Source: Piromyces finnis finn
Taxonomy: Eukaryota > Fungi > Neocallimastigomycota
Direction of reading: 5' to 3'
Assembly (NCBI GenBank): GCA_002104945.1
Contig: MCFH01000093.1
Coordinates: 1 to 64,000 of the forward strand
Length of the DNA stretch: 64,000 bases
Shown in pieces: positions 211 to 61,777 of this stretch; position 1 is the first letter of the stretch; each line of letters begins with the position of its first letter. The translations under genes were made by a program, and so were the position numbers. A model generated the notes under the pieces. The model saw only the letters and a list, made by a program, of their open reading frames with translations, was not told where the DNA came from and made no database searches.

Positions 211-2858
211 ATGAATTCATCATTTCTTTTAATTACTTTTATTATAATAATAGTATTGAAATGTATTTCTACCCAAAGTACTATTAATGAAGAATGTTCT
301 TTAGTCAACAGATTAATGAGTATTGACGAAGTATATAACTGTTGTAGAGAAGATAAAATTACTTGTTCTAATGATGGTCATATCACTAAACTGTAATAAA
401 TTAATCATTTTATATTATTTTCTTAAAATTAATCAAATTTTTTTTTTTATTGTATAAGGTATTACTTTTTTTTTATGAAATATTAAAAAATAGATATATA
501 TTAATAATTTTATATTTATATTAAAAAAAAAAAAAAAAAAAAAGACATGCATCTTCGGATTATATGAAATCTTCCTATTATTTTATACCACCAGAAATCG
601 ATATATTAACAAATTTAAAAGATCTGTAATGATAGAAATAATTTATTATTTTAAATAAGTTATTATCATATGTATGGCGAAAGAGTTTATTTTTAATATT
701 AATTATTTTAAATTTTTAAATAGAAATTTATTGGGAAATGGATTAATTGGTTCTATACCACCTGAACTTGGAAATTTAACAAATTTAGAATATTTGTAAT
801 AATGATCGAAATAATTTATCACTAATCTTTGTAAATAAGTTTTTAAGACGTTTATTTTTAATAATTATTTAAAATAATAGACGTTTATTTAATACTAATT
901 TAACTGGTTCTATCCCACTGGAACTTGGAAATTTGATAAATTTAGAATATCTGTAATTTTTTCTTACAATAATAAACATAAAGACGTAATTTAAAGATAT
1001 AAAGGATTAAATATATTTTATTTTATTTTTTAAAACAGTGAAATAGATTCAAATAAATTAACAGGCTCTATACCCTCTGAACTTGGAAATTTATCAGAAT
1101 TGGGATATTTGTAATTCTTAAAATATAAATAAAATTAAATAAAAATTATTTAATAAAGCTTTTATTCCAATGTTTTTATATTTAAAAATTAAAAGAGTTA
1201 TAGCTAAAAATCATTTAACAGGCTCAATTCCTTCTTCATTAGGAAATTTAACAAAATTAAAAGATTTGTAATGAATTAAAAAAATACCTACTATTTAATA
1301 ATAGTTATATAAAATAATTATTTTTATCTAATTTATTATTATTATTTTTTTTCAAAAGAGGTATATTTAATACTAATTTAACTGGTACAATTCCACCGGA
1401 ATTTGGAAACTTAATAAATCTGGAATATTTGTATTTGTTTAAATTTATATTATAGAATATTATATATATATATATACATTTTTATGACTTATTGCTTTTT
1501 TTAATTATATATATTTTTATTGTCACTTGAAATAGAAATTTATGTAATAATAAGTTAACTGGCCCTATATCACAGGAAATTGGAAAATTAGTCAACTTGA
1601 AAAAATTGTATTAAAGTTATAAAGTGAAATAATTATTTATTTATTTATTATCTTTACTTATTTTTTATTTTTTTTCATTTTTTATTTACATATCAAATAG
1701 ATATTTATTTAATAATGAATTCACTGGTTCCATACCAAAAGAAATTGGAACTATTTTAAAGCTAAAAACTTTGTAATACATTTTATAACATTTTACTTTT
1801 ATATATTTTATTATTACTATTATTTTTATATATTATATTATTTACTATCAAAAAAAAAAAAAAAAATTTTTTTTAATTATTATTTAAAATAGAGATATAT
1901 CCTTAAATAAGTTAAATGGTTTGATTTTGCCTGAACTTGGAAATTTATCAGATTTAGAATATTTGTAATTTATAAATAATTATTATATAATAATATAATA
2001 TATATATAATACTAAATACGAGGATTATTAAATAAAATGAAATATTTTTATTTTATTACTTTTTAATATGAAATTAGAGATTTATCTAATAACAATTTAA
2101 CTGGTTCTATACCCCCAGAACTTGGAAAATTAACAAAATTAAAAACCTTGTAAATTAATATTTTATTATTTTTTTAAATAGATATATATATTTATTTACT
2201 AATAATTTTATCATTTTAAATAGAATATTATCTAATAATAACTTAACTGGTTCTATACCCCCAGAGCTTGGAAAATTAACAAAATTAAAAACTTTGTAAT
2301 TAATATTTTAACTTTTTCTTAAAGAGAAAAATTAGAGAAAGAACTCTTTTTTTTCTTTTGTTTATATTCCTATACTAATTGTTAATTATTAATAATTTTA
2401 TCCTTTTTTTTATTTTAAACAGAGAATTATCAAATAATAACTTAAGTGGTTCGATTCCAAAAGAAATTAAGAAATTAAATATAAAATTGTAATTTATCTC
2501 TTTAATTTTACATATATCCTATTAAAAATTTTATTATATATCCTTTTAAAATTCCATTATTTGAAAAATATTTATAATTTTTTAAATTTTATAAATTCAA
2601 TAATAAAGAAATACTTCTAATAATCCTTTATTAGAAACAAATGAAACTAAGAGTAGTAACTATAAATTAATAATTATAATAAGTCCGATTATCCTATGTG
2701 CATTATTTATTATTTTGGAAATAATACATTTACGTATAAAAAATAATAGAAGAAATAGCAATTATAGTGAAGGTGATGATACAGTATCTTCAAAGCAATA
2801 TAAAACTAATGACAATGATATAACGTGTAGTAATATTATTATTGGATCGAATAATTGA
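211..2858 (+). CDS. Leucine-rich-repeat receptor-like protein (signal peptide, Cys-containing N-cap, about 12 plant-type LRRs, single TM helix, short cytoplasmic tail), about 432 aa, 14 exons
   Basis: Manual splicing: 211-392, 545-625, 724-795, 881-952, 1039-1110, 1196-1267, 1359-1430, 1536-1607, 1701-1772, 1893-1964, 2078-2149, 2224-2295, 2423-2488, 2609-2858. All introns are GT-AG and phase 2; total 1299 nt with an open frame. Repeats read L|xLxxNxLTGSIPxELGxLxxLxxL (e.g. DLSNNNLTGSIPPELGKLTKLKTL). N-terminus MNSSFLLITFIIIIVLKCISTQ is signal-like; last exon has LIIIISPIILCALFIILEII followed by basic RIKNNRR. Confidence 0.9.
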
Positions 2859-9482: not shown

Positions 9483-11765
9483 ATGGGGCAAGTATTTGGT
9501 AAATCCGAACATATCGACTTTAATTCTGAAGGTTAGTATTAAAAAAGTATAATATAAAATAATAAATATTAATGAAAAAAAAAATTAATTAATATTAAAC
9601 TTTTGTAAAAGGAAAAGAAATTAATAATTTATTTTTTTATATGCGTAAATAACATAGTCGAACTTCGTCACTTTAATTTATTAAGATGTGTTGGAAAGGG
9701 TGCTTTTGGTAAAGTTCGTATTGTTGAACATCGTGATTCAAAAAAATTGTATGCATTAAAATATATCAATAAACTACAATGTATTAAAATTAGAGCAGTT
9801 CAAAATATAATAAGAGAAAGATATATTCTTGAAGAAATTGAGCATCCATTCATTGTAAATTTAAGATATGCTTTTCAAGATGATGAAAATATGTTCATGG
9901 TTATAGATCTTATGATGGGTGGTGATTTACGTTATCACTTAGATCGTTTAGGCGGTTTCAGCGAAGAAATGGTTCGTTTCTTTGCTTCTGAAATTTCATG
10001 TGCCTTAAATTATTTACATAATAAAAATATTCTTCATCGTGATCTTAAGCCAGATAATATCTTATTAGATACAAAAGGTCATTCCCACATTACAGATTTT
10101 AATATTGCTACAAAAATCGATCCAAAAAAATTACCACGTTCACAGTCAGGTACATTAGCCTATATGGCTCCTGAAGTTTTTAAAGGAAAGGGTTATTCCT
10201 ATTCTGTTGATTGGTGGGGTCTTGGTGTTATTTTATATGAATGTTTATATGGTAAACGTCCATTTAAGGGCCAAAATAATGAACAATTAACAATGAGTAT
10301 TATTTCTCCCCAAGATATTAGATTCCCAACATGTAATAGTTTAACTAAATACCCTGTCAAAGTATCTCAGGATTGTATTATGTTTTTAAAGGGATTACTT
10401 ACAAAAGATCCAAATCAACGTTTAGGTTGTCGTCCAGGTATTGAACTTGATGAACTCTGGGAACATCCTTGGCTCATTGGTATCGATTGGGATAAATTAG
10501 AACGTAAAGAATATGTTGCACCATTTATACCAGATTCTGATCGTGCTAACTTTGATGCAACCTATGATTTAGAAGAACTTCTTTTAGAAGACAATCCATT
10601 AGTTCACAAGAAGAAGAAGAAGAAGGAAAAGAATGAATCAAAACAAAAGAGTCATAGTACTTCAGTTCATTCAAAGCATGCTAATCATAAATCTAAGTTA
10701 GAAACTGAATTTGAATATATTGAAAAGCATTTTAAAATTTATGATTCCTCTATGTTTGATCGTTGTAAGGAATTAATTGAAAAAGAAAATCTTTTTAGTC
10801 AATTACCACCAGAAATTCAACAAATTGCTTCCCAAGCAGCCTATGTCAATACAAATTACAATGGTAAAGGTCCTTCTGGTATAGTTGCTGCTAAATTAAG
10901 AGAAAAGAAATTACAGGTTATACTATTCCAACAACACGTAGAGCTCCAACGACAAATGGAACAAAAGGAAATAAATGGTAATGAAAATATGAGTGACAGT
11001 AATGTAAGTAGTAATGGTAGTGCTAGTAATAAAGAAATAAATAATATGAATGATTTACAAGCCTATTACAAAAAGCACATTAAAATAAATCCAAATTTAA
11101 TTAATACAAATACCAATGCTGCCACTTTAAATTCACCTACACCATCACAATCCCCATCCACTCCACAGGGCTATACTCAAACGTTAGCTCACTCCAATTA
11201 CGCCACATCCATAAATACATCTGAATCGAAAAATCAAAGTCCAACCACAAATAAACAACCTTACACCGCATCCATTTCCCCTGTCATGAAATCACCAATT
11301 CTTAAAAAATCATCCCCTCCATTAAAATATAACAATCAAAATAACAGTGAATTAGAACTTCAAGAAATTACTATGGCATTAAAAAATATGAATCCAGATT
11401 CACCAACCAAACCAAGTAATCCTAAAATAATAAGTGTTCCAGCAAATGCAACTGGACAACCTGTAACCAAAGTCTATTACAATAAGAGTCCAAAATTAAA
11501 TAATGGTTCACCCTATAATCGCTATGCTATTCCTAGTGGTAGTAAAACACCAACTCTTGAAGTTCCAGTGTATCTTTCTAATCCAAATGAAATGGATGGT
11601 ATGCCACCACTTGTTAGTCAAGAACTTCAAGATATTAATAATCCAGGATACTATCTTGGTCGTTCCAATTCACCACCACTTGTAGATACTCCACCAAGAA
11701 CTGCAAGTGTTGGTGTTCTCCGTGAAATTATTCCAAATCCATATTTAAAAAAGAATCCACGTTAA
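9483..11765 (+). CDS. AGC-group Ser/Thr protein kinase, STK32/YANK-like, about 718 aa with a long low-complexity C-terminal tail
   Basis: Exons 9483-9531 and 9658-11765 give MGQVFGKSEHIDFNSEVELRHFNLLRCVGKGAFGKV...YALK...HRDLKPDN...DFN...GTLAYMAPE...DWWGLG and an AGC C-terminal segment (APFIPDSDRANFDATYDLEELLLEDNPL). DFN in place of DFG and the LEELLLEDNPL motif are typical of STK32/YANK kinases. MG start is a possible myristoylation site. Confidence 0.88.
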
Positions 11766-34772: not shown

Positions 34773-36865
34773 ATGATTAGAGCATTCTTATTCTTAATAG
34801 CTTTAAGTAAGTAGGATAAAAATATATATTCATAAATTCTAAATATTAATAATATTTAAAAAATTATTCCTTTCTTATTAAAAATTTTAATATTTTTCTA
34901 GTTTTTGCTGTTGAAGCTAAATTCCTTGATAATCTTGACAGAACTTTTAGTACTGGAGATGATAAAGTTCTTGTAGTCAATATTACTCTTCCAGATGAAG
35001 ATTATGCCCAAGTTTTAGAATATGTTCAAGTTGGCTTAGAAGACATTGAAAATGGTACTACTAAAGATTTCAAGACAAAGTCCGCTACTGTTATCATTGC
35101 TGATAATGAGTAAGTCTTTTTTTCAATAATTTTAAAAATAAAAATAATAAAATAAAAGCGTATTTATAATACTGATTTTATTCCAAATATCTTATCATTA
35201 TCATTATTATAGAGATGTTAAAGTTTTTAAAGATAGTACTTTTAAGATTGGTGGTAATTTTGCTAGAACTTTCAGTAAGCCAGGTTTTAATATTAATCTT
35301 AATGAAGAATATAATAATAGAAAGAGTTTCCGTCTTCGTGCTGATGTTAATGATAAATCTTATTTAAGACAAAAGCTTCTTACTGATATTACTAACAGAG
35401 TCGGTTTACCTTCCATTCAAAGTACTTTTGTTACACTTACTATTAATGGAAATTACTATGGATTGTAAATATTTCTATATAGACTAACTTTATATAATAG
35501 TTTTCTTAAAAGAAATAAATGATTAATAGAAATACTATTATTTGATTATGTTATTTTATTTTTATTTCCTTTATTTTGTATAAACAACTTATTTAATTAT
35601 TAAATGTATATTTTATTTTTATTTTTTTATCTTATATAAATATATATATATATATTAAAGATACAAATTATTAGATACCATTAAACCAGTGAACATTAAA
35701 AAACTTTACGATACCAAAACAAACAAAAAGGAATTAGAATTATATAATTGTAAATATAGCTTTACTTTTACCGAAGAATCCTCAAATGGTTGTGTTAATG
35801 ATTCTAGCGATGATGAAAATGATATTGCTGAATTCCAAAAATTCATTGCCGCTGCTGATAAAGCTACTACCATAGAAGAATTAGATGCCATCATGAATGT
35901 AGATATTATTTTAAAGTATTTTGCTATCGATTGGCTTGTTGGATCTTTTGATCATTTCTTAGTTTTAGGTCATAATTTCTATTTCTACAAAAATGAAATT
36001 AACAATAAATGGGATATTATCTATTATGATTATGATAATACTCTTGGACAAGGTCTTGGTGGTTGGGCTTGGTACAATGGTAAAAATATGAATGTTACCG
36101 ACTTCACCAAACTTTCCTTCCAACAATTTTCTAATGATCAAAAGATTCTTGATATTCTTGTCAATAATGATGATAGTAGATTTAAGAAAAACTTAAAGGA
36201 AGTATTAACTTATGGTTTTAATCCAGTTCTTTTAAATGAACATATTGATGATCTTAAATCCCTTATTTCACCTTATGTTAAAAAAGATTTCATTCCAATT
36301 CACGATGAATTACCAGGTAGAGTTAATAAAAAAGAAAAAAGGTTTTCCAATGGATTCTTCCTATGAACTCTATGAACAAAATTCAGAATACGAAACTACT
36401 CTTTACATTGAAGTTGATCTAGAATATACTCCAGGTATTAAAGCATGGATTAGAGATTCCTTTGAAAATGCTTGTGCTCAATATGGATTTGATAAGGAAG
36501 AAATTTTAAAGGATACTGTCTCCTTAACACCAACATCATTCTTTACTAAAGTTAAAAATGGTATTTTACCCTATGATAATATGAATAATGATGGTCATGT
36601 CGAAGATCAATGTTGGGCTTCAGAACAAGGTTATTCCTGTTGTCAAAGATGTAATGTTGTCCTTATCGAAGAAAATGGCCAAAAATGGGGTGTTGAAAAT
36701 AACCAATGGTGTGGTATTCAAGACAGTGTTTGTGAAGCTGAAGAAGATGTTTGTCAAAGTAGTGACTATGGATGTTGTGAAACTTGTAATCAATACTATG
36801 TTGATTACACCGGTAGATACGGTTATGAAAATGGACAATGGTGTCTTGTCAAGAATACTTGTTAA
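34773..36865 (+). CDS. CotH-family protein kinase with signal peptide and two C-terminal fungal dockerin (CBM10-type) domains, paralog 1; +1 frameshift near 36328-36340
   Basis: Exons 34773-34806, 34902-35109, 35213-35464, 35661-36865 total 1699 nt, one more than a multiple of 3. CotH motifs: KPGFNI, FRLRAD..D.SYLRQKL, DWLVGSFDHF..GHNFYFY, DIIYYDYDNTLG. Dockerins: CWASEQGYSCC...WGVENNQWCG and GCCETC...YGYENGQWC. Confidence 0.85.
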
Positions 36866-41057: not shown

Positions 41058-43212
41058 ATGATTAAAGGATTGATAATATTTCTTTCTTTGAGTATGTTTC
41101 TTTTGTTAAAATAACATAAATATAAATATAGGATAAAAAAAAAAAAACAATTGTTATTACTGGAAAAAAACTAATAGCATTCTACTATTTTATTCTTATT
41201 TAGTTTTGATAATCAAAGCTAAATTTTTAGATAATTTAGATAGAACTTTCAGTAGTGGTGACAATAAGGTTCTTGAAGTTTCTATTACTATATCCGATGA
41301 AGACTATAATAAAATTGTAGAATGTGTTCAAGTTAGTCCAATGGAAGTTTTCCAAAATAATGCTAAAGAACATGAAGCTGTTGCTAATATCACTATTACT
41401 GATAATGAGTAATTATAATAGCTATTAAATATTATTATACTATTATATCAATATCATTTATAAAATAAACTAATTATTATGATAATATTATAATTATTCA
41501 AATTATTCAAATTATTATTTTATCATAAAAAATATATATATATAAACATATTTATATTATCATTATTTATTAATAAAGTAAAGTAAAGTCTTTTCCAGGA
41601 AGTAAATTAAAGACTTCTGGTAACTTTTCAAAATCTTTCACCAAACCAGGTTTTAATATTGAACTTTCTGAAAAATATAAACAAAGAAAGATTTTCCGTC
41701 TCCGTACCGATTCAAGTGATGTTTCTCATATAAGACAAAAGGTTGTTTGTGATATTGCAAACAGAGTTGGTTTACCATCTATTCAAAGTACTTTTGTTAG
41801 ACTTACTATTAATGGAAAATTATTTGGTTTGTAAGTAGAATGGAAATATTTAGTTATTTATTAAGAATAGAAAAGGAATTAAAATAATATTTAATTCATA
41901 TAAAAAAATTATATAAATACGGAGTAAAATAAATAATTATTAAAAAAAACTATAACTATTATTAATTAATTACATCTGTAAAATAAAATTTATTCTTAGA
42001 TTTGGTCTTATGGATTCTCTTAAGCCATACAATATTAAAAGAATGTATAACACAAAGACTGATAAAAAAGATTTAAAATTAATTCAATGTAAAGATATGG
42101 GTTTCAGATTCACTTCCGATACTGTAAATATTTGTAGTAGTGATGGTGGTGATGAAAGCGCCTTTGAAGAATTTAAACAATTTGTTGCTGAAGTTGAAAA
42201 AGCTAATTCACTTGAAGATTTAGAAAAAATTATGAATGTTGATATATTTTTAAAATATTTTGCTCTTGAATGGGTTATTGGTTCATTCGATCACATGCTT
42301 GTATTAGGTCACAATTTCTATTTCTATAAAAACGAAATCAATAATAAATGGGATGTTATCTATTACGATTTTGATAATACTCTTGGTCAAGCTCAAAGAG
42401 TTGATTGGGCTTGGTCTTCAGGAAAAAATCAAGGTGTTGAAGATTACACTACATTAACTTTTGAAGAATTTACTGATAACCAAAGAATTTTCGATATTGC
42501 TGTTAACAAGGATGATACAAGATTCAAGAAAAACTTAAAGGAACTTTTAACTTTCGGTTACAATCCAGTTCTTTTAAACGAACACATTGATGATCTTAAA
42601 TCATACATTTCTCCATATGTAAAAGAAGAATACACTCCAATAAACGGAGAATATCCAGGAAGACTTAATAAACTCGGTTATCCTTTAGATGGTCTTACCT
42701 ACGAATCCTATGAATTAAATTCTGAATATGGCACTGTTGGACACCAAGAAATGATGGGTGAATTACGTGTCCCAGGTATTAAAGCATGGATTAGAGATTC
42801 ATTTGAAAGTGTTTGCGCTCAATACGGATTTGATAAGGAAGAAATTTTAAAGGATACTGTCACTTTAGCTCCAACATCTTTCTTTACTAAAATTAAGAAT
42901 GGAATTTCTCCATATGATGGTTCTATTATTCCAAACAACAATAATGATGATGATGAATGTTGGGCTTCAGAACAAGGTTATGATTGTTGTGAAAGTTGTA
43001 ACGTTGTCTTTGTCGAAGAAAATGGCCAAAAATGGGGTGTTGAAAATAACCAATGGTGTGGTATTCAAGACAGTGTTTGTGAAGCTGAAGAAGATGTTTG
43101 TCAAAGTAGTGACTATGGATGTTGTGAAACTTGTAATCAATACTATGTTGATTACACCGGTAGATACGGTTACGAAAACGGACAATGGTGTCTTGTTAAA
43201 AATACTTGTTAA
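41058..43212 (+). CDS. CotH-family protein kinase with signal peptide and two fungal dockerin domains, paralog 2, about 567 aa, intact
   Basis: Exons 41058-41091, 41204-41408, 41579-41830, 42000-43212 total 1704 nt, open frame. Same intron positions as paralog 1. Motifs EWVIGSFDHML..GHNFYFY, DVIYYDFDNTLG, and two Cys/Trp dockerins. Confidence 0.9.
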
Positions 43213-44386: not shown

Positions 44387-47300
44387 TTATTTGTATTTAT
44401 ATAATAAACTATCTCTAAATATTTTCATTTTATTTTTATTCAAGTATTTAGTAAAACCATCTGCTAAATTTTCTTCTGATTTTATATATTCTAGACTGAT
44501 TTTATTTTCTTTAATTAATTCTCTTACTTTATGGTACTTAATATCAATATGTTTTGACTTTGGATTAATCGTTTCATTATTTGCGTTGTAAATAGTTGCT
44601 TGATTATCAATATTGATTTTTAAGCATTCTTCCTTTATTTTTAATTCACTAAAAATATTTCTATACCACAGAGCTTGCTTTGAGCATTCACAAAGTCCAT
44701 AATATTCTGCTTCGGCGGTTGAAGTTGATACACATTTTTGCAGTTTTGAGTACCAGCTTGTTGGTCCATTTCCCAATAAAAATACAAATCCAGTGGTAGA
44801 TTTTCTTGTTTCTTCATCTCCCCCATAGTCTGAATCTACAAAAATCTTCAAATTTAAGTTTCTTTCAAAACGGATTCCATAATGAGGATTTTCTTTCAGA
44901 TATTTGAATATTTGTAATACATTCTTCCAATTTTGGATAGTAGGATTTTGTGAGAACCTAGATGCTTTGGTTACTGAAAATAAGATATCTGGACGAGTAC
45001 CTATGGCTAAATATAAAAGACTTCCTATTGCAGCTCTATAAGTAGTAGGGTCAAAAGGCTGATTGAGTTGTTCATCATTCTTGATTGGTGTAGTTGTCTT
45101 TGATCCTCTGCAGTTTTCTAAACCAAATTTGTGTAATATATCCTTTAAATACCTTTCTTGATGTAACAAATACCCATCTTTTAACGTTTCTACTTTGATT
45201 CCTATGATGAAATTTGCATCACCAACATCCGTGATAACATATTTCTCTTTAATTAATTTAATAGTTTTATCTATTTCTTCCTTTTTACCAGTTATTAGGA
45301 TGTCATCAACATATATTCCAACTAAACATACTAATTTATTGTTTTTGGTCTTTATAAATATGCATGGTTCGCTAACTAATTTCTGAAATCCTAGTTCAAT
45401 GAGAGTATTGCTGATGTTGTTATTCCATTCTCTTGCTGCTTGTTTTAAGCCATATAATGCTTTATTTAATTTCCATAATCCTTTTTTATACATTTTATCT
45501 CCTTCAGGTGCTTTCATATATATATCTTCCTTTAAATCTGCATACAAATATGCGGCCTTAACATCTAATTGATGGATTTTATAGTTATTAATTGCAGCTA
45601 TTCCTATTAGGATTCTTAATGAGTCTTGTTTTAGAGTAGGAGAAAAGGTCTCATTGTAGTCTTCTCCATATTCTTGTGTAAAACCTCTGGCTACAAGTCT
45701 AGCTTTGTATTTTTCTATCTCACCAGTGCTATTCCTTTTTATCTTAAATACCCATCTTGAATCAATAATATTGGCGTCTTCTGGAACTTCATCTATTCTT
45801 TTGAACACTTTTCTTTCTTTCATATTTAGCAATTCGGCTTCTATTGCTTTTATCCACTTATCCTTATCTTTTCTTTTAAATATATCATTATAGGAATTTG
45901 GCTCCTTGATTTGTGCTATAGTTAGCGCCACTTCCTTAATTTTCTTCTTTTCTGGTTCATGTTCATGTGGCTTACTAAATTTTTCTTCTATGACATCTTC
46001 ACTTGGAACAAGTTTCCGCTTTCTTGGGAATTTTTCTTCCTTTGGTGGATGATTTTCATTTAATTTAAAATTTTTATTGGATTTTAATTTTCTATTTAGA
46101 TTTCTCTTATTCAAAAAATTTTGTTTTGATAATAACTTTTTCTTATCAAAAAATTTTTTCTTAGATTTATCTTTATTGATTGGATCTTTAATTTCATTTT
46201 TATTTTTTAAATTTCTCAAATTATATTCCTTTTTATTTTGATTATTTAAATTACTTTCTTTTTCATCAGAAATATTTTTAAATTTGGACTTTTCTTCAGG
46301 AATATTGATATTTTCTTTATTCAAATTTCTTCTTATTTCATTCTCATTAATAGGTATGTAATTTTTCTTATAATATTCTTCATTCTTATAATTTACTTTT
46401 ACATTTGAATAATTATTTTCTATTTCTTTTCTATTATTTTTATTTATATTATTTTTGACACTCTCAATATTTTCAAAATCAATTTTCTTTCTTGTTCCTA
46501 AATCAATGTCAGGACTCAGGATATTTAAAAAATCATTATTGTCAATTTCTCCAGTTAAATCATTTATCTCCATTTCTGATGGTGTTTTTAATACTTCTTC
46601 AATTAATTCATTTTTATTTACAATGTCTGAATTTTCTTCTATAAAATAAACATTTCCTTTTGCATTCAGGTATTTATTATTCCTTTTATTATCCTTTGAT
46701 ATATTTGAATTGTCTTTACTGTTTATATTTTTATTTTTCTTGTCGTCATTTCTCTTTATATTCACTTCTTTAATTTCACAAATTTCAGTTTCGTCAGCAC
46801 TATTATATTTTAAATTATTATATTTTAAATTATTTTCTTCCAAGGTAAAGTTATTTATATTGCCGTCGTTACTTCCTGAAATGTCATTATTGTTTTCTTT
46901 TTCTTTATTGGTTTCACTTACAGATTCCATTGAAGTACTTATTTTAATTTCTTTATTTTCTTCCATTTCTTCAATTTTCTGGTAATTATTTTTGTTCAAA
47001 CGTTCTTTTTTCTTTTCTTTTAGTTTAATATAGTCTAAGAGATTTAAGTCTTCTTCTTCTGAGTCTTCTATACTCATATTACTATCATTAGTGTCCTCGC
47101 AGACTTGCATAAAACTTTCAGAACTATTATTTTTTTCTTTATTTAATAGTGACGTGAGCTTATCCAGCTTTTCTTCTATATTTCTAAATTTTTCTTCATA
47201 ATTTACTTCTTTTAAGTCTTCTTTATTACTAGTTTTATCATTGAGTGTTTCTAGGTTTTCATTCATTAATTTATCATTTTCATTTGAAATGTCCTTTTCT

Positions 47301-49840
47301 TTTTTGTCTTTATTGTTATTGTTTTCATTTTCTTTATCATACATATAATTAAAGTTCCTTACTTGAAAAGTTTCTGTATCTTGACTATATGTTTCATTAT
47401 TATTTTCTTTTTCTAAATTATAATTGTAGTCACCAGGTTCTTCTTCTAAAAAACCTACGACTCTTTTCACTTTAATTTTCCTTGATTTTATGTCGAATAT
47501 TCTGTATCCTACTGAAGATTCATCATATCCGATAAAGATTCCCTCCTTAGTTTTGTCTTGAAATTTTGGAATGTTACTGTCATCTAAATAATACACTTTA
47601 CATCCAAATACTCTTAAATTTTTATAATCAACTTTTCTGTTGTACATTAATTCAAATGGTATTTCACCATTAATTCCACTGTGCGGAACTCGATTATGAA
47701 CATAGTTCGCTGTTTTCACAGCATCTTCCCAAAAGCGACGACATAACCTTGCGTCCATTAACATTGCAGTAGCAGTTTTTATTAACTTTCCATTGAATCT
47801 TTCTGCTCTTCCATTCTGCTCCGGATTTCCAGGGACGGTGAATTGTTGAGTTATTCCATATTCGTTACATAACTCCTTGAAGTTATTAGAAGTGAATTCA
47901 GTTCCATTATCGCTTCTAAGATATTTTACTTTGGATGATAATTCATTAGTAGTTTTATTCAGCCAATTTCCAAATTCTTTGAAAACATCACTTTTATTCT
48001 TGACAAATATTACCCATCCATATCGACTGTAATCATCTAAGATACTTAAAAAATATACGTTGTCATGAATTGATGGTGTGATTGGACCTACCAAATCGAT
48101 GTGTACTAGTTCCAAAACACTTGATGCTCTACTATCTGACCTTTTATGAGGGATTTCTTTCATTTTGCTTCTCATGCATATTGTACAATTGTGAATATTG
48201 TTCTTTTCATCATTATTGTTGAAATTCAGATGCCCTATTCTTCTATGCCAGTATTCACCATTGTTTCGTACATTATCGCACATTGAGTAATTATTAACTA
48301 CATTACCTTCTTTGATGTACAAATTGAATACATCATATTCATTTGCTTTAACTTCGTATACATTATCTGTTTTCTTATCTTTTATATATGCAAATACATT
48401 ATTGTTCTTCTCATCAAAGATTATTTGGTAGCCACTTTTAACTAACTTGGCAACAGAAATTAAATTTCGTTTTACATCTGGGATGTACATTACATCTTCT
48501 AATTTTATTGGTTCTTCATTAATAGATCCATTTACTTCACCCATATGTGTTGACTTTGTAGTCGCTCCATTTGCATAATTGATTGGTTCTACATGTTCAA
48601 AAACATTTTTGAGAATTCCTATATCTTTGGTAATATGATTAGAAGCACCAGAATCTAAAGTCCATGTAGTAAAACTTGTAGGTACATTTTCACAAGATAC
48701 GTAATTGCATGATTTATTATTACATTCATCATTGTTATTGTCAAATAATGTATTGTAATCAACTGTAAACAAATCTTGATATCCAACTTCTGGTTCAAAG
48801 TCTTCAGTGGTTTGTTTATTTACTATTTCACCTGTTGCTAAAAATGCTTCCTTGCCTTTATTTTTCTCTTTTCTTAGCCTTCTTGTAACTTCTTCTGAAA
48901 GTTCTTTTTGAATACGACATTGTTTTACAGTATGTCCTTTTTGATGACAAAAATAACATGTAATGTTTTGTTTATTTTTGTTATTCCAATTTCTTTCTTC
49001 ATTGGACTTTTCTTTTCCTTTATTTGTATTTTTATTATGATTATTACTTTGTTTGTTGCGGTAGTATTTAGTACTTTCCTTTCTTTTATCACCTTTGTAA
49101 CTACCTTCAACACTAAAGATATGTCTAATTCCGAAGGTTTCAGATTTCTCTTTCGGATCAAATTTGTTCATCTTATCTATCATTCTTGCTGTGTCCTTTT
49201 TGCATTCTTCCCAGTCTTCATGCTTAAGGACTGTGACTTTCCTATATTTTTCTGGTAAGGCTTGATACAGTAAACCAATTTTTTCTTCATCATCTATTTT
49301 CACATTTAGTTGTTCTAACTTATTAAAGTTGGAATTTAACTTATTTACAAATCTTGAGAAACTTTCTTTCGGGTCGTATTTTAAGGAGTTTGTTTCCTTA
49401 ATAAGCCTATTCTTTCTTTCTATTTTATCCCCTAAATAAATGTCTTCTAATAGTTTCCACATTTCGTAGCTTGTTAAAGACCTATCTTGGATATCTTGTT
49501 GGCAGTTTGGGCCTAAAGTATACCTAATTAAAAATTGGATATTCCTATCTGTTTTTAAGTCATCTTCGGTTACGTTCTTATCATAGTAGGTATTGATTTC
49601 AAAAGGTGCCTTTAGATATTCTTCTCCGTCGATATCCATTCCTTCGTCACTTTTGATCTTTGGGGTTTTGTTTTCATCAACCCAATCTTCAAGACCATAA
49701 TAATTTAAAATATTCCTCATAAACATTTGCCACGTTATGAAATTTTTATTGTTCAATTCATAAGTGACCTTTCCTAGCATAACGGTAGGATCGAATATAG
49801 GGATTGATCCAGTATCTCCGTTAGATTTTCTTTTTGACAT
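44387..49840 (-). CDS. Copia Gag-Pol polyprotein, 1817 aa
   Basis: Zinc knuckle CYFCHQKGHTVKQC; protease WTLDSGASNH; HHCC WHRRIGH..CTIC; integrase LVHIDLVGP..SDNGTEF..NGRAER; RT IYVDDILI; RNase H FVDSDYGG. The order PR-IN-RT-RH defines Ty1/copia. Confidence 0.97.
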   Translation of the reverse strand: MSKRKSNGDTGSIPIFDPTVMLGKVTYELNNKNFITWQMFMRNILNYYGLEDWVDENKTPKIKSDEGMDIDGEEYLKAPFEINTYYDKNVTEDDLKTDRNIQFLIRYTLGPNCQQDIQDRSLTSYEMWKLLEDIYLGDKIERKNRLIKETNSLKYDPKESFSRFVNKLNSNFNKLEQLNVKIDDEEKIGLLYQALPEKYRKVTVLKHEDWEECKKDTARMIDKMNKFDPKEKSETFGIRHIFSVEGSYKGDKRKESTKYYRNKQSNNHNKNTNKGKEKSNEERNWNNKNKQNITCYFCHQKGHTVKQCRIQKELSEEVTRRLRKEKNKGKEAFLATGEIVNKQTTEDFEPEVGYQDLFTVDYNTLFDNNNDECNNKSCNYVSCENVPTSFTTWTLDSGASNHITKDIGILKNVFEHVEPINYANGATTKSTHMGEVNGSINEEPIKLEDVMYIPDVKRNLISVAKLVKSGYQIIFDEKNNNVFAYIKDKKTDNVYEVKANEYDVFNLYIKEGNVVNNYSMCDNVRNNGEYWHRRIGHLNFNNNDEKNNIHNCTICMRSKMKEIPHKRSDSRASSVLELVHIDLVGPITPSIHDNVYFLSILDDYSRYGWVIFVKNKSDVFKEFGNWLNKTTNELSSKVKYLRSDNGTEFTSNNFKELCNEYGITQQFTVPGNPEQNGRAERFNGKLIKTATAMLMDARLCRRFWEDAVKTANYVHNRVPHSGINGEIPFELMYNRKVDYKNLRVFGCKVYYLDDSNIPKFQDKTKEGIFIGYDESSVGYRIFDIKSRKIKVKRVVGFLEEEPGDYNYNLEKENNNETYSQDTETFQVRNFNYMYDKENENNNNKDKKEKDISNENDKLMNENLETLNDKTSNKEDLKEVNYEEKFRNIEEKLDKLTSLLNKEKNNSSESFMQVCEDTNDSNMSIEDSEEEDLNLLDYIKLKEKKKERLNKNNYQKIEEMEENKEIKISTSMESVSETNKEKENNNDISGSNDGNINNFTLEENNLKYNNLKYNSADETEICEIKEVNIKRNDDKKNKNINSKDNSNISKDNKRNNKYLNAKGNVYFIEENSDIVNKNELIEEVLKTPSEMEINDLTGEIDNNDFLNILSPDIDLGTRKKIDFENIESVKNNINKNNRKEIENNYSNVKVNYKNEEYYKKNYIPINENEIRRNLNKENINIPEEKSKFKNISDEKESNLNNQNKKEYNLRNLKNKNEIKDPINKDKSKKKFFDKKKLLSKQNFLNKRNLNRKLKSNKNFKLNENHPPKEEKFPRKRKLVPSEDVIEEKFSKPHEHEPEKKKIKEVALTIAQIKEPNSYNDIFKRKDKDKWIKAIEAELLNMKERKVFKRIDEVPEDANIIDSRWVFKIKRNSTGEIEKYKARLVARGFTQEYGEDYNETFSPTLKQDSLRILIGIAAINNYKIHQLDVKAAYLYADLKEDIYMKAPEGDKMYKKGLWKLNKALYGLKQAAREWNNNISNTLIELGFQKLVSEPCIFIKTKNNKLVCLVGIYVDDILITGKKEEIDKTIKLIKEKYVITDVGDANFIIGIKVETLKDGYLLHQERYLKDILHKFGLENCRGSKTTTPIKNDEQLNQPFDPTTYRAAIGSLLYLAIGTRPDILFSVTKASRFSQNPTIQNWKNVLQIFKYLKENPHYGIRFERNLNLKIFVDSDYGGDEETRKSTTGFVFLLGNGPTSWYSKLQKCVSTSTAEAEYYGLCECSKQALWYRNIFSELKIKEECLKINIDNQATIYNANNETINPKSKHIDIKYHKVRELIKENKISLEYIKSEENLADGFTKYLNKNKMKIFRDSLLYKYK

Positions 49841-54788: not shown

Positions 54789-57700
54789 CAAAATTTTGTT
54801 ATGGGACAAAATTATGGTATCCATTAGTTGCGCTGGCCCTCCTGGCCTGTCTTACTATTTCTTCACCATTGAGGTTCTTGGCTGTTGTTTCAAATCTTTT
54901 GAACATTTACCATTGCTGGCCAATAATAAAAGGCATAATTTTGGTTAAAAGCTCCGATGTTACCGTCAAGAATGGTATTCCTTCTACAGTACCCGATTGA
55001 ATCTAACACTTGCAAAGTTCTTTCCATTCCCTTAAATTGTAATTGATATTATTAAAACTTCATCTCTTCAAGGAATAATTTAAATTTTTTATTGCACACA
55101 CTAGAATAATCATATACATTAATATTCACCAGATTATTAGAACTATTACTATTATTAACTAAATAACTATCTAAATTAAAATTATTATCTTCACTATTGC
55201 TATTACTACTATTATTATTAATATTATTAAAATTATTATTATTAATACTAAAGTTACTATTACTACTACTACTACTACTACTACTATTATTATTATTGCT
55301 AAATTTACTAATGTAAATATTTTCATTATTATTGATGGGATTGTTGGAATTACGTTGACTGAAAAAATTTAATAGTTGGATTATATAATTTAATTGTAAT
55401 GTTTAATATGGACAATCTAATAACCAATATTTAATACTTTGATCTTCACTCTTGAAACATGGACAGTAGTTAGGGCAAACTGAATCACTTGTGAGTTAAG
55501 TACTAGCTTTTTGAAAGGAATAGGAATATTAGGATTTCTTAAGAATTTGCTGACAGAGAAAAGTCCTTTCAAAACCTTGTTATTAAGAGCTTTAATAACC
55601 CTAGTTTTCCTGCTAAGTAAAATGTTGGATCTTTCTTGCTCTGATTTTCTAATAATTCAGGACGAACCACCATCGTTGAACATTTCTGGATACTAAATTC
55701 CATTTCATTATACAAAGTCTATTCATTAACTCTTTTTAGCATCTTTTTTTTAAGCATCCTCTTGATGGAGCACAAATAACTATATCATCTGCAAAAAGTC
55801 CACCACAGCATCAAGTGCCACCTAAACTGACTCCGAGATCTTCGCACTCTTTAAAAATATCATTAATAAAGAGATTAAAGAGAATAGGAGAAAGAGGGCA
55901 TCCTTGACGGACTCCTTTCTTCACATCAAAAGATTTCGAGAATTGTCCATCTAATTTGACATTAGCCTTAGATGTTAAATATAAATTTTTGATAAATTGT
56001 AGACTCTTACCTCGGATTCCTAAACAATCTAATTTATGGAGAATATTACCGATTGGGACTGAATCGTATGCTTTCCTGAGATCTAAAAAGGCCAAATATG
56101 TCTCTTTATTATCTAATTGACGTCTACGGCATATTTCTTGGATTGAAATGAAAAGACTAATACTTTCTTCCTTTTTTCGAAAACCAAATTGTTCAGGTCT
56201 AATGAAATTATTCTTTAGACCATATTCTGAGATTCTAGTGGTGACAATTTTGGAAATCAACTTAATACCATTATTGATAAGTGATATACCTCGATAGTTA
56301 TCACAATCTGTCAAATCTCCCTTCTTAGGAATAGAAACAATACTGGATTCATTCCATGAGTTGGGGAAATCTCCATCCCAAATACGGTTGAATAATTTAA
56401 GAATAAAATTTAAACCATGAGCATCATTATCTGAAGTAGTATTACCAGAAGAATTATTATCTGTAGCATTATTAGAATCATTACTTGATGGAACTAATGC
56501 TTTGTAAAATTCAATTGGAATACCATCCGGACCTGATGCTTTATAATTTGGAGTAGAGAGGATAGCTGACTTGACTTCATCAATACTAATATCTTGGTTG
56601 ATATCCCACTCATCAAGCATAGGAAGTGAAAAACGTTTATTCGTTGGTTCTTCATACCAATGCTCCAAATCAAGACTTACACCACTTGGATCTGATGCAA
56701 GCTTTTCGAAATGATCATGCCACACTTCTAGTTGTTCTTCCGTAGCAACAACTAATTCTCCATTTTTATTTTTAATTGGTTGAGCAATAAAGAAAGAATC
56801 TTTTCCAATTTTTGCAGTTTTCTTGATCCATTTCCAGGCCTTCTTAGGATTATGACTCTTCATATACTCACATCCTGTTTTAATCCAATGAAGATATTCT
56901 TGCTTCCTAAATTCATTACATCTTTTGTGGATGTAATCAATGAGTTTACGGTAGATTTTAATTCTTTTAATAAATTCATCTATATCATAAATTCTTTCTT
57001 TTTTAAATCTCTTATACAACTTCATTTTGATTTTTTGAAGATTAAAAATTTGTTGTGAAATATGAAATGAAGACTTTATAACATTATTTGCTGAAGTAAT
57101 ACTGAGCTCGTCTGCAATTGAAAAAGCAGTTGAAGTAAACTCTTTGGAAAGTTCATCTGTAGAAACATTAGGATCGTTGAATTTTGCTGAAAGTATTTGG
57201 AATTTATTATGACTGAGAATAGATTCCTTTTCCTCAATACATTTTAATCTATTCCATTTCAGAATTTTCTTAGGAACATTAAAGTCATTAGAAAAATCTT
57301 CCATAGGAATAATTTTACCATTAATAAGAAGTGGCTTATGGTCTGATACTGGATAAAAATTATTTATAAATGATCCTGAGTGAATAAGATCTTTCATCTT
57401 CGAATTGATAAGAGCATGGTCAATGTCGGAAGATTGATCACCTCGAGTCCAAGAGATAGTAGACCCTCTAAGCGGAAGAATTTCCCGATCTCCTAATCCA
57501 TTAGTTGATAACCAGTTGGATAATTTTACTTTAGACATATTAAAATCACCAACAAGAATCGATGGATGGGATGAATGAGTTTGTAACCACAAGCGAACTT
57601 CTAACTTTGCATGATCAACATAGATGTTGTGATGACTATGAGGCATATAAACATTTCCAATCGAGCATTTAAATCTATTCCAGAGACTAAAAGTATAAAT

Positions 57701-59380
57701 AGAAATAATATACTTTCCAGAGAAGTTTTCAAGTGAGGCTTGACACGAATTGTGAAAACCTAAATATAAACCTCTCATTCCAGGAACTGATTCGTCAGCT
57801 TTCTTGAAAAAGTGTCTATAGTTTCGCAAAGTAACACGACAAGGATAATCTGTATTCGAACCAGAACCATTACCAGTTTCTTGGAAACATAAAAATAATG
57901 GTTTGAAAATAGCTGTGAAATAGCTAATACTATCTCTCTTTTCGTGATTCCACCCATTGGTGTTCCAACTAAGACAAAAAGAAAAGTTATCAGGCTTGTT
58001 GGATGAGGAAGAATCGTTGCTATTATTATTATTATTAAAGTCATCGTTATTAATGGATGATGCATCAGAGGAATAAGTAGAACTATTACTAGATGGCTGT
58101 GAAACTGAAGAACTATCAACTATTGAACTTTTATCAGAGTTGATAGAACTATTAGAATTAATTGTTGAATGTTGAGATTGAAATTGTGTTTGTTGTAGAT
58201 CTGGAATATTTTCATGATGGGAAACTTGTTGAAGATCTTGTTGAAGATCTTGTTGAAGATCGGATTGTTGATGAGATTGTTGAACTGATTGTTGAAATGA
58301 TTGTTGAATAGAATGTTGATGTTTATTAGAAACTAAAATTTTACGTTTGAGAGTGGAAAAAGTGTATTTGTGATTCCTTCTACTACGAGCTGAAAAGGAA
58401 ATTGAGGTAACTGAAAGTTTCTTCTTTAACATGTGTAAGATTTTAATACAATCTTTTGATGAACCATGAACCTTGACTAAGAAAAAGTGATCATTGAAAG
58501 TCTGAAAATATTTAACACTAATAATTGAATTAAATTTATCTTCTAGAATAACCTCGAGTTTTTCCCATAGCATATTTACTGACCATGATCGAATACCACG
58601 GATAAAGAAGGAGCGAATATCATCTAAGGGGATACCATAAGACCGGGTACCACGTCTGATATAATTCTTATCTTTAATATAAAGGACTGACATGATAATT
58701 AATTCTAATTAAAAAATATTGAATATAAAATAAATACTAATAAAAATTATAAATATAACGTATATGGAAAAAAATTTGTCTCTCTCTCTCTTCTTAAAAG
58801 TACTGGATAGTACAAAAATTGTTACGATGCTTTGTTTAAAGTTTCTTTTTTTTTTTGAATTCTAGTTGTAAATTTTCTTTAAAAATTCTAGTTTTGGTTT
58901 GTTGTTAGTAAATTCGATTCGCTTTTGACACTAAACTTGTTTGACTTTACTTTTCATTAAATATTTAAATTGGTAAAAAATTTGAATCAAGAATGTCGAC
59001 ACCAGAAAGCTTGTGAATAGTATTTTTACATGATGTAGAGTGAATCAGTCTCTTACAAGAACAATACAACAATAGCTACATGAATATAAAAATACAATGC
59101 AAATGCTAAAGTTGACTACATTGGATTCTTACAAGAGAAGAGTAGTACTACATGAATACATGAATAAAAGAAAAAATACAGCAACAAAATGTATTACTCT
59201 TCTAATTAAATACTATACAAACTTACCTGAATATCAAACATTCAACTTATTCATCAAATACTTAAATTCGATGAATAAAATGTTTTTTAATCGCTCAGTA
59301 CCATGAGCTTAGTCCTAATAATTTTCCCTTAAAGACTAACCAAGCATCCATTGCGCAATACTTGGATTTAATTCTTTCTA

Positions 59381-60240: not shown

Positions 60241-61734
60241 GGCATCAAATATTTTAAACTTTATTATTAATTTAATTAAAATTATAATACATGTAATAAA
60301 AAATTAAAAATAAATAAAAATAAAAAAAATATGTTTAAATAAACACAAATGAATAAAAATTGGGTATAATGTATTCTAGTAATTTTAATTAAAGTAAGAA
60401 AGCCACTATCATACTAAAGTATAATAATTGTATTTGACTTCCAATGGGACACCGAGCCAAAGATCAAAATTTTGTCATGGAACAAAATTATGATCTCCAT
60501 TGGTTGCGCTGGCCCTCCTGGCCTGTCTTACTGTTTCTTCAGCATTGACGCTCTTGGATGTTGCTTCAAACCTTTTGAACATTGACCATTGCTGGCCAAT
60601 AGCAAAAGGCATGATTTTGGTTAGAAGTTCCGCGGTTACCGTCAAGAATGGTGTTCCTTCATTAGTACCAGATTGAATCTGACGCTTACAAAGTTCTTTC
60701 CATTCCCTTGAATTGTAATTAATATTGTTAAAACTTCTTCCCCCAAGAAGGAATTTAAATATTTTACTGCACACACTAGAATAATCATACACATTAATAT
60801 TCACCGGATTATTAGAACTATTACTATCATTAACTAAATTACTATCTAAATTAGAATTATTATCTTCACTATTGCTATCATTATTAATATTATTATTTCT
60901 ATTACTACTATTGTTATTATTACTATTGTTATTATTACTATTGTTATTATTATTATTGTTACTATTACTATTACTGTTATTGCTATCTCTACTGACATTA
61001 TCAATTTCATTATTATTGATAGGACTATTGGAATTACGTTGACTGAAAAAATTTAATAGCTGGACTATGGAATCATAATGTTTAATACGGATATCTCTAA
61101 ATGTTGGACAATCTAATAACCAATGTTTAATACTTTGATCTCCACACTTGCAACATGGACAGTAGTTAGGACAAACTGGATCAACAAATTTAGCAGCTTT
61201 GGCAACTCTAGCATCCAACTTATATCCGCTTCTTGCTTTCAATAGCCAGTAGAAGCCATAGGCAAACTCTGGGTACTCATAACATAATTTAATAAAATCT
61301 TTAGTTTCAATAAATTTATTATCATCATAATATTGCGCTTTGATTGAATTCCCTTTGAGATCTTTCCAATAAAAGTTTTTAACTGCTTTAACATCTCCAT
61401 GCTTCTTTAGTTTTTTTTCAAGTGTCCTACTTGATTTGCACCACGTGTATTTTCTAAATTTAGGAATGTAATTGACAAGGTGTGAGATAATACAATTTGA
61501 GTTTTTCCATTTGTTAAAACATCTAACCTGAGCTAACGCACATTTGGCTGACAATGGAGGAATATTCAAATCTTTTGAGATAGAGTATAAAGATATAAAC
61601 GATACGGCTTTATGAACTCCGGCAACCCATCGTATTCCTTTGTTAACATGCTTCTGAGCAATCCTAGACCTAGCTTTGTTGGATCCAAGTAATGGTGCAA
61701 AGTATGAAACTCTGCTAATCACTTGAGAGTTAAG

Positions 61735-61737
<3 letters not shown>
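60199..61737 (-). mobile_element. Young 5'-truncated LINE (copy 2) with 39-nt poly(A)
   Basis: T39 at 60199-60237. Encodes the post-RT region, the C-terminal zinc motif CPCCKCGDQSIKHWLLDC and an Asn/Ser tract. Confidence 0.93.

Positions 61738-61777
<40 letters not shown>

Follow-up and report, generated by a model that had tools for sequence, protein, structure and literature searches.

The window analysed here is a 64,000-nucleotide stretch of Piromyces finnis DNA, and positions 211-2858 of its forward strand hold an intact gene of 14 exons and 432 codons, upstream of which the contig ends after only 210 nt. Splice sites were assigned from the GT-AG rule, the reading frame and conservation among paralogues, and local translation of the joined coding sequence (1299 nt) is in frame. 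All 13 introns are GT-AG introns in phase 2 that split the same Leu codon; they measure 74-152 nt and have a GC content of 7-16%. The exons, with the evidence on which each was placed in brackets, are as follows.

211-392, + strand: exon 1, with the start codon, a signal-peptide-like segment and a four-Cys N-cap (C29, C44, C45, C52), ending in a phase-2 donor (paralogue alignment)
545-625, + strand: exon 2, 81 nt, an irregular first leucine-rich repeat (LRR) of 27 codons (AG/GT flanks; in frame with these bounds only)
724-795, + strand: LRR2, 72-nt exon (pattern scan)
881-952, + strand: LRR3, 72-nt exon, 83% identical in DNA to 1359-1430 (pattern scan, exon comparison)
1039-1110, + strand: LRR4, 72-nt exon (pattern scan; weak Pfam LRR_1 match)
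1196-1267, + strand: LRR5, 72-nt exon (pattern scan; single-exon Pfam scan)
1359-1430, + strand: LRR6, 72-nt exon, paired as a duplicate with the non-adjacent 881-952 and sharing 89% identity with exon 4 of the C91 paralogue (pattern scan, exon comparison)
1536-1607, + strand: LRR7, 72-nt exon (pattern scan)
1701-1772, + strand: LRR8, 72-nt exon (pattern scan)
1893-1964, + strand: LRR9, 72-nt exon (pattern scan)
2078-2149, + strand: LRR10, 72-nt exon, 90% identical to 2224-2295 (pattern scan; Pfam LRR_1 above cut-off)
2224-2295, + strand: LRR11, 72-nt exon, a tandem duplicate of 2078-2149 (pattern scan, exon comparison)
2423-2488, + strand: exon 13, 66 nt, the last LRR (LRR12), an exon type conserved family-wide (paralogue comparison)
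2609-2858, + strand: exon 14, with a Cys-free C-terminal cap or stalk (NNPLL motif), a transmembrane (TM) helix, a basic stop-transfer stretch, a 43-residue tail and the stop codon (hydropathy, paralogue comparison)

A sequence-only reading of this DNA had described ten consecutive 72-bp exons at 724-2295, each encoding one 24-aa LRR and each split in phase 2 at a Leu codon, and both coordinates and counts were confirmed by a pattern scan (AG + 72 nt + GTA, stop-free in frame 2) that returned exactly ten such exons, all consecutive. Each consists of 23 whole codons and the split Leu codon (TT/A, CT/A or CT/T, the slash marking the junction), and the flanking 81-nt and 66-nt exons follow the same split-Leu rule. 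No other 72-nt LRR exon of this pattern was found on either strand of the 64-kb window, and the design is therefore not a background property of AT-rich DNA.

The product comprises 12 plant-type LRRs, i.e. ten units of 24 residues between the irregular first and the shortened last repeat. In an exon-by-exon scan, Pfam LRR_1 and LRR_4 matched individual exons, mostly weakly. In the N-cap, M1, C29, N33, C44, C45 and C52 are the same in all 27 first exons compared (exon 1 and 26 paralogous ones), and the cap aligns with the NCC.W.GV.C motif of Quercus RLP12 (hhalign E = 3.6e-5, probability 71%); Pfam LRRNT_2 gave no match in exon 1 even at E = 10. Hydropathy (Kyte-Doolittle), the sole basis on which the signal peptide and TM helix were predicted, peaks only at residues 1-22 and at about 369-389, the latter followed by a basic stretch. 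The stalk before the TM segment reads NTSNNPLLETNETKSSNYK; no Cys occurs from residue 210 up to the TM segment, so that the last LRR is not followed by a C-terminal Cys-pair cap. The ectodomain carries 11 N-x-S/T sites. No kinase or other Pfam domain was found above cut-off in the last exon, which closes with a stop codon at 2856-2858 after the 43-residue tail. The receptor-like-protein architecture proposed earlier for this fungal gene (predicted signal peptide, one TM helix, short kinase-less tail) is thus borne out by hydropathy and by the lack of a Pfam kinase. The nearest kinase ORF, at 9747-11765 and 6.9 kb downstream, is a separate gene; a link between the two was considered and rejected, since in every paralogue a tail of this kind is closed by a stop codon. 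Within the tail, a motif SS-Q/K-QYK ... CS-D/N-I-I/V-I conserved in the subclade is kept in five paralogues whose tails are otherwise only ~57% identical, which suggests that the tail may serve signalling or trafficking through partner proteins. Surface location, ligand binding and signalling are predictions for the product, and so would be a receptor or immune function.

The P. finnis protein ORX48690.1 matches the genome that carries the gene at 96-100% identity, in line with its species assignment. The gene is not single-copy in kind. The P. finnis genome contains about 50 paralogues bearing the N-cap (50 N-cap matches and at least 150 LRR-exon matches), a census that is a lower bound and leaves out the first exon of one C156 paralogue. 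Many of them lie in tandem clusters, one of which, at C177:206-272 kb, holds ~20 genes on the same strand. The paralogous loci scanned, 183 kb in all, contain 327 stop-free AG-72-GT candidates, and 301 of these have at least 6 of the 9 LRR scaffold residues, so that the 72-nt phase-2 design is common to at least 300 LRR exons there. The gene at 211-2858 shows all marks of the family (the cap motif in exon 1, 72-nt LRR exons, a 66-nt penultimate exon, and a last exon with NNPLL and a TM helix) and is one ordinary member of the gut-fungal N-cap LRR family. LRR number varies among the nearest paralogues, with 10, 8, 7 and 5 exons of 72 nt. The ends of the proteins vary too: one cluster member has a hevein-like Cys-rich module in place of the TM helix, database relatives have EGF-like Cys-rich modules and hydrophobic C-termini, and one relative has a MATH (TRAF-like) domain behind its TM helix. 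Gene models of the family are already public under uninformative names (NCBI 'L domain-like protein').

Every LRR exon unit is symmetric (phase 2-2), and any exon can therefore be lost or gained in frame, as the sequence-only reading had pointed out. Its further proposals of ongoing exon exchange and of alternative splicing found no support here. Close paralogues are collinear exon by exon; among exons with a close relative, the nearest neighbour lies in another gene at equal rank or one rank off for 82%, is off rank by 2 or more for 10% and lies in the same gene for 8%. Within genes, identity reaches 85% or more in just 3 of the 977 exon pairs (median 65%), and most exon units are accordingly old. 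Two exon-unit duplications are present in the gene under study (881-952 with 1359-1430, and 2078-2149 with 2224-2295). The introns beside the duplicated exons are no more similar than random intron pairs, so the duplication of whole exon-plus-intron blocks is deduced from the exons alone. From the prevailing collinearity it follows that the family has grown mainly by whole-gene tandem duplication, with an occasional duplication of a single exon unit. Among transcript-like contigs of relatives (5, 2 and 2 cluster members compared, a small sample that represents other genes than 211-2858), there were no isoforms differing by a 24-residue indel.

Variation along the repeat is unevenly distributed. 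Across the family LRR exons, entropy is highest at positions 2, 4, 5, 7 and 24, in agreement with the earlier claim that the most variable residues lie on the concave face, and N6, G10, I12, P13, G17, L19 and L22 are nearly invariant in the family logo. In 32 mutual-best exon pairs, a small sample in which gene conversion and extreme AT bias may play a part, dN/dS was 1.24 for concave, 0.34 for convex and 0.52 for scaffold positions. The substitution patterns of concave and convex positions differ (Fisher p = 6e-4), and the excess of the concave value over 1 is not significant (binomial p = 0.34). Evolution at the concave beta-sheet residues is about neutral or a little faster, and the scaffold and convex face are constrained; such a pattern would fit a diversifying ligand-binding surface.

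The N-cap profile had only 129 matches among 1.84 billion representatives, and those with names came from Piromyces, Pecoramyces and Neocallimastix, together with one chytrid and one weak plant RLP; a metagenome scan with exon 1 alone gave no match. The same 72-nt phase-2 layout is present in Neocallimastix californiae, and in the chytrid Phlyctochytrium bullatum (KAJ3110216.1) 22 of 30 introns are in phase 2 and fall on or beside the same Leu. Judged by these matches, the N-cap LRR family appears to be restricted to anaerobic gut fungi, with a layout loosely shared with a chytrid. For full-length comparisons, database relatives (P0090 and others) were used as proxies, and the exons of the 211-2858 gene were searched singly. 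The solved structures that best matched the LRRs of a relative were the plant GSO1, MIK2 and FLS2 ectodomains (E = 1e-160). When the ectodomain of a relative was used in a word search, long bacterial, plant and diatom LRR proteins swamped the result; no usable signal of a nearest relative emerged, and neither a plant gene of the SERK/ERECTA type nor the annotated protein of the 211-2858 gene itself was returned. With plant LRR exon structure taken from the literature (PMC3050792), the 72-nt phase-2 layout is no special device of the 211-2858 gene: the whole family inherited it and has it in common with plant LRR-kinase genes.

The explanation that we consider probable, taken whole, is that of a type-I membrane LRR gene from an expanded gut-fungal family, with an inherited layout, growth mainly by whole-gene duplication and a diversifying concave face. 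The product would be a type-I membrane protein with a plant-type solenoid of 24-residue LRRs, a four-Cys N-cap and a short, kinase-less cytoplasmic tail, from a family of perhaps 50 members per gut-fungal genome, many in tandem clusters. The 72-nt, one-LRR exon with its phase-2 split Leu would have been inherited along with the family; unequal recombination may add or remove the symmetric units in frame over evolutionary time, and the gene at 211-2858 would have undergone two such unit duplications in a family that expanded mainly by duplication of whole genes. The concave face of the solenoid would form the diversifying, ligand-binding surface, and the conserved tail motif could couple it to signalling or trafficking via partner proteins.

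It has been reasoned instead that the symmetric exons are exchanged as cassettes, the repertoire being diversified by frequent shuffling between genes or by regulated skipping and alternative splicing. Uniform 72-nt, phase 2-2 exons, whose loss, gain or swap keeps the frame, would suit such a mechanism, as would the different exon numbers of the nearest paralogues and the 18% of exons with a close relative that have it in the same gene or at least two ranks off elsewhere; brown-algal ROCO genes with 72-bp LRR exons reportedly combine shuffling with alternative splicing (PMC11378527). The collinearity of close paralogues, the scarcity of similar exon pairs within genes, introns beside duplicated exons that are as dissimilar as random pairs and the small transcript sample lacking 24-residue variants all speak against it, and we regard it as very unlikely. 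If an LRR-RLP or LRR-RLK ectodomain gene had passed from plants, introns included, by horizontal transfer, the plant-type repeat, the cap and the identical intron position would all be accounted for at once. Intron position and phase are indeed those of rice LRR-kinase genes, plant ectodomains are the best structural matches, the N-cap can be aligned to that of a Quercus RLP, and plant tissue is the habitat of gut fungi. However, a free-living chytrid has the same cap type (DCC...G-I/V-x-C), with phase-2 introns that fall on or beside the same Leu, which argues for older vertical inheritance in zoosporic fungi. Pfam LRRNT_2 is undetected and the C-terminal Cys cap is absent, and 24-residue LRRs abound in bacteria and diatoms as well, so that LRR similarity says little on phylogeny. 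Brown algae too have LRR exons of 72 nt or in phase 2, and Tetrahymena and vertebrate hormone receptors have LRR exons in phase 2. Transfer from plants is accordingly highly improbable.

A different function for the same protein is that of a surface adhesin or scaffold, in which the solenoid acts as a general binding module for plant particles, the fungus's own wall, cellulosome parts or partner microbes and the tail is an anchor only. Chitin-binding-like, EGF-like or MATH modules are present in relatives, so the role of the LRR module may lie in adhesion or scaffolding and not in signalling. The tail without a kinase or other signalling domain, the cluster member that ends in a hevein-like module with no TM helix there, and the EGF-like modules and hydrophobic C-termini of database relatives would all be at home in such a protein. 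An inert anchor, though, would not need the motif that five paralogues have kept in otherwise divergent tails, and the MATH domain of one relative suggests signalling in some members. Plant RLPs likewise have no kinase of their own and signal through partners. We therefore hold an adhesin or scaffold to be unlikely, and prefer the reading as a duplicated family of membrane LRR proteins with a diversifying face.

In a 2010 survey of 49 fungal genomes, proteins that combine LRRs with a single TM helix numbered only five, and its authors considered LRR receptors almost absent from Fungi; no gut fungus was among the genomes surveyed (PMC2939053). With ~50 genes for predicted plant-style LRR surface proteins, whose putative binding faces evolve fast, P. 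finnis is a clear exception, and the family provides concrete candidates for the sensing of plant particles, bacteria and methanogen partners by rumen and hindgut fungi. One LRR receptor-like gene of Pecoramyces is among the ten most down-regulated in methanogen co-culture (PMC6414434). A bolder conjecture, to which we give little credence as yet, is that gut fungi possess a clustered, expanded repertoire of plant-like LRR receptor-like proteins whose concave faces diversify under selection and recognise bacteria, methanogens or plant-derived ligands, with gain and loss of 72-nt units as a germ-line diversifier. If true, fungi would have in this diversifying recognition repertoire an equivalent of the pattern-recognition receptors of plants. 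The family also touches on the age of the LRR exon unit, as its intron position recurs in plant LRR-kinase genes and, loosely, in a chytrid.

Several known systems share parts of this design. A system built on a 90-bp LRR exon unit has equal-length LRR exon arrays, phase-2 introns, clonal expansion and genomic gene clusters, but differs in having thousands of genes, an expansion linked to retrotransposon-associated recombination and another LRR class. The brown-algal LRR-ROCO genes of Ectocarpus and Saccharina, proposed as a recognition-receptor repertoire, also have one LRR per 72-bp exon, uniform intron phase and variable exposed positions (PMC3341825, PMC11378527); they encode cytoplasmic LRR-ROC-COR GTPases, for which alternative splicing and shuffling that breaks collinearity have been reported, whereas the gut-fungal product is a predicted surface type-I membrane protein with mostly collinear paralogues. 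The P. bullatum protein has the same cap type followed by plant-type LRRs, and its introns are mostly in phase 2 at or next to the Leu codon. It differs in having eight cap-LRR-Cys-rich modules in one protein of 2258 residues, with exons that often hold two LRRs, intron positions that shift by one codon and some introns in phase 0.

In rice, LRR-kinase genes have 72-nt exons with phase-2 introns cutting the first Leu of xxLxLxx, and the growth of the intron-rich ones has been attributed to exon duplication (PMC3050792). Such intron-rich plant genes (rice group 5; SERK/ERECTA-like) share the 72-nt one-LRR exon and the split Leu with the fungal gene (PMC3050792), but the fungal arrays are kinase-less and almost uniformly 72 nt, whereas rice mixes exons of one and two LRRs. 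The 211-2858 polypeptide differs from LRR-RLKs in having no kinase domain, and from plant LRR-RLPs, PGIPs and the ectodomains of LRR-RLKs, taken as one group, in lacking the C-terminal Cys-pair cap, the island domain, the acidic juxtamembrane domain and a GxxxG in the TM helix, in its undetected Pfam LRRNT_2 and in its fungal host. With the same group of plant LRR-RLPs and PGIPs (Cf-9/RLP type) and LRR-RLK ectodomains it shares a predicted signal peptide, what may be the same type of N-cap (motif CC...G-I/V-x-C), tandem 24-residue LxxLxLxxNxLxGxIPxxLGxL repeats, a single predicted TM helix, a short kinase-less tail, many N-glycosylation sites, tandem gene clusters and a concentration of variation in xxLxLxx.

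A plus-strand gene lies within the opening 3.3 kb of the window, where GC is 17%. A mechanical scan (AG, 72 nt of open frame, GTA) located ten consecutive 72-nt exons in it, each comprising 23 codons of a plant-type LRR and ending in TT or CT; a Leu codon is completed by the base with which the following exon opens. No other 72-nt LRR exons were found in the remaining 60 kb, both strands scanned. A total of 14 exons were joined into an open frame of 1299 nt:

211-392, plus strand: exon 1
545-625, plus strand: 81-nt exon
724-2295, plus strand: ten 72-nt LRR exons
2423-2488, plus strand: 66-nt exon
2609-2858, plus strand: last exon

All 13 introns are GT-AG, in phase 2 and 74-152 nt long, with a GC content of 7-16% against 24% in the exons. 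The product has a hydrophobic N-terminus, a four-Cys cap, 12 LRRs, a short stalk without Cys, a hydrophobic segment at about 369-389, basic residues and a 43-residue tail; its ectodomain has 11 N-x-S/T sites. As the exon scan, joined frame, intron phase and product features, including hydropathy, agree, the description of this gene in the sequence-only reading proved exact to the base.

The rest of the window includes the following genes and elements:

9747-11765, plus strand: Ser/Thr protein kinase, 6.9 kb downstream of the LRR gene and on the same strand
35689-36366, plus strand: CotH-domain gene
42010-43212, plus strand: CotH-domain gene
44387-49840, minus strand: retroelement
55811-58693, minus strand: retroelement
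60475-63941, minus strand: retroelement

The kinase frame begins within the kinase profile, so it has upstream exons; a link to the LRR gene was considered and rejected, since every paralogue closes with a similar tail and a stop codon. CotH and CBM10-dockerin genes are a hallmark of gut fungi, and one of the two CotH genes here carries a CBM10 fungal dockerin (cellulosome-associated protein). The retroelements are of two kinds: a single long open frame of a copia-type LTR retrotransposon, with gag, integrase and RVT_2, and LINE-like elements that combine an endonuclease with RVT_1.

Searches used individual exons of the window gene, with full-length relatives from the databases standing in for the whole protein. 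Family members were searched for in the P. finnis assembly (56.46 Mb, 232 contigs). A single LRR exon gave at least 150 scored matches, each within an open frame some 26-28 codons long, and exon 1 gave 50, from which a family of roughly 45-50 members was estimated, some of them on duplicate contigs. Contigs C93 and C75 share identical match patterns and scores with C177:45-54 kb, as do C23 and C63 with C197:123-139 kb; these duplicate assembly pieces (haplotigs) raise the raw counts. The GenBank protein ORX48690.1 (P. finnis) aligns exon by exon to contig C152 at 96-100% identity. In 183 kb from family clusters, exon length peaks sharply at 72 nt in a single common phase, and 301 of 327 stop-free 72-nt candidates have at least six of nine scaffold residues; arrays of 72-bp phase-2 LRR exons are present in many paralogues. 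The cluster at C177:206-272 kb comprises about 20 genes in head-to-tail order on a single strand, and each contains between 2 and 16 of these exons.

Common to the paralogues are the cap motif, a penultimate exon of 66 nt and a last exon that encodes NNPLL, a TM helix and a tail. A divergent cluster member at C177:242847-245313 (minus strand; fetched loci L034/L035) has sixteen 72-nt LRR exons and a different first exon, and a hevein-like Cys-rich module (CG..W..C....CCS..G.CG....C) replaces its TM helix and tail. No near-identical copy of the window gene was found in the genome; its nearest relatives are two genes on C156 and one each on C91 and C196, whose first exons are 51-71% identical to it and whose last exons are 44-58% identical, and the window gene has ten 72-nt exons against 7, 5 and 8 in its nearest relatives. 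In the tails of this subclade (window 2609-2858 and the four relatives) SSQQYKTN ... CSDIIIK is kept, and the remainder is poorly conserved.

The sequence-only reading had proposed that these symmetric exons could act as exchangeable cassettes, shuffled or alternatively spliced for diversification. Exon order is collinear between close paralogues, whose 3' exons are the most alike; at C177:45-75 kb identity is 97-100% in 3' LRR exons against 78-88% in 5' exons, a gradient suggestive of 3' gene conversion. Nearest relatives lay at the same or an adjacent rank of another gene in 82% of cases.

Location of the nearest relative for 170 exons having one at 80% identity or more
Same rank, other gene: 64%
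One rank off, other gene: 18%
Two or more ranks off, other gene: 10%
Same gene: 8%

Of 977 exon pairs within single genes, only 3 are at least 85% identical. Within the window gene, identity is 90% between the adjacent exons 2078-2149 and 2224-2295, and 83% between exons 881-952 and 1359-1430, which lie three units apart; introns beside duplicated exons resemble each other no more than random introns do. Among relatives, the few transcript-like variants are distinguished by start codon or point changes, never by 24 residues. Judged from these comparisons, the family appears to grow by tandem duplication of whole genes with occasional gain or loss of single units, not by frequent cassette exchange. 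The expanded family and the variable concave face of the proposal stand; frequent exchange of exons is not supported.

Per-position LRR entropy is highest at 2, 4, 5, 7 and 24 (2.95-3.5 bits), placing the most variable residues on the concave face as predicted, and close to zero at N6, G10, I12, P13, L19 and L22. Selection was estimated by Nei-Gojobori counts over 32 mutual-best exon pairs from different genes.

dN/dS by LRR position class, with binomial p against neutrality
Concave x of xxLxLxx: 1.24; p = 0.34, not above 1
Positions 7, 9, 11: 0.76
Scaffold: 0.52; p = 0.01, purifying
Convex x: 0.34; p = 0.001, purifying

The non-synonymous to synonymous ratio differs between concave and convex positions (Fisher p = 6e-4). 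Concave dN/dS exceeds that of the convex and scaffold classes without rising significantly above 1; the binding face is therefore either relieved of constraint or diversifying mildly, on a frame that itself stays constrained.

Plant LRR ectodomains bind ligands on a concave sheet lined by xxLxLxx residues, and by analogy with solved structures the same residues are read here as the binding face. No domain was found in the cytoplasmic tail of the window gene, in which a motif, SS-Q/K-QYK ... CS-D/N-I-I/V-I, is kept across five paralogues. A family relative on a JGI contig (P0037, 447 aa) joins cap, LRRs and TM helix to a cytoplasmic MATH_2 (TRAF-like) domain, an unusual pairing that hints at signalling. 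The main rival is a purely adhesive role for the LRR surface protein; given the concave-face analogy, the kept motif and the MATH-bearing relative, we favour a ligand-binding surface protein that would signal or be sorted via partner proteins.

A cap profile built from 27 first exons had only 129 matches among 1.84 billion representative proteins (E up to 0.001), the majority exon-sized ORFs on metagenome contigs. Named matches belong to Piromyces, Pecoramyces or Neocallimastix, there called 'L domain-like protein', except two: one from the chytrid Phlyctochytrium bullatum and, as a weak match, a receptor-like protein of Quercus. Several matches are full-length frames on JGI contigs of 1.0-2.5 kb; one such contig is probably a transcript, judging by its untranslated, AT-rich flanks and the short run of A at its end. 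In that case the family is expressed, with LRR exons spliced into continuous arrays. A distant member in Neocallimastix californiae likewise devotes one exon to each LRR and splits the same codon. The P. bullatum gene (KAJ3110216.1; L053:501-9543) encodes eight tandem modules of Cys cap, 4-5 plant-type LRRs and Cys-rich end, its caps reading DCC...G-I/V-x-C; 22 of its 30 introns are in phase 2, those within LRRs falling at the same Leu codon as in the gut-fungal genes or at the next. These occurrences make the layout an old one within zoosporic fungi.

Among solved structures, the plant ectodomains of GSO1, MIK2, FLS2, PEPR1, ERL1 and BRI1 far outscore all others for a full-length family relative. 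The Quercus RLP has an NCC.W.GV.C cap to which the cap profile aligns (E = 3.6e-5), but Pfam LRRNT_2 was not detected. The intron cut of the window gene, ..K-T-[L]-D-L-S-N.., is exactly the one published for rice LRR-kinase genes, in which phase-2 introns between 72-nt exons interrupt the first Leu of xxLxLxx (PMC3050792). A word search matched many bacterial, diatom and plant proteins, the 24-residue LRR type being widespread; bacterial proteins that combine a T9SS sorting domain (PF18962) with 24-residue LRRs of the plant type make up many of the best matches to a gut-fungal LRR ectodomain. Brown-algal ROCO genes have 72 bp LRR exons too, and have been proposed to undergo shuffling and alternative splicing (PMC3341825, PMC11378527); Tetrahymena has 90 bp exons with phase-2 introns (PMC6564038), and vertebrate gonadotropin receptors are also described as having phase-2 introns. 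No description of the gut-fungal N-cap LRR family was found in the literature searched; its only mention is a Pecoramyces gene annotated 'LRR receptor-like serine...', which was among the ten most down-regulated in methanogen co-culture (PMC6414434). Across 49 fungal genomes, gut fungi not included, Soanes and Talbot counted just five proteins that combine LRRs with a TM helix (PMC2939053). Since layouts of this sort are described in plants, brown algae and, with 90 bp exons, Tetrahymena, and the 24-residue LRR is widespread, the design is of an already known kind; what is new here is its presence as a large family within a fungus.
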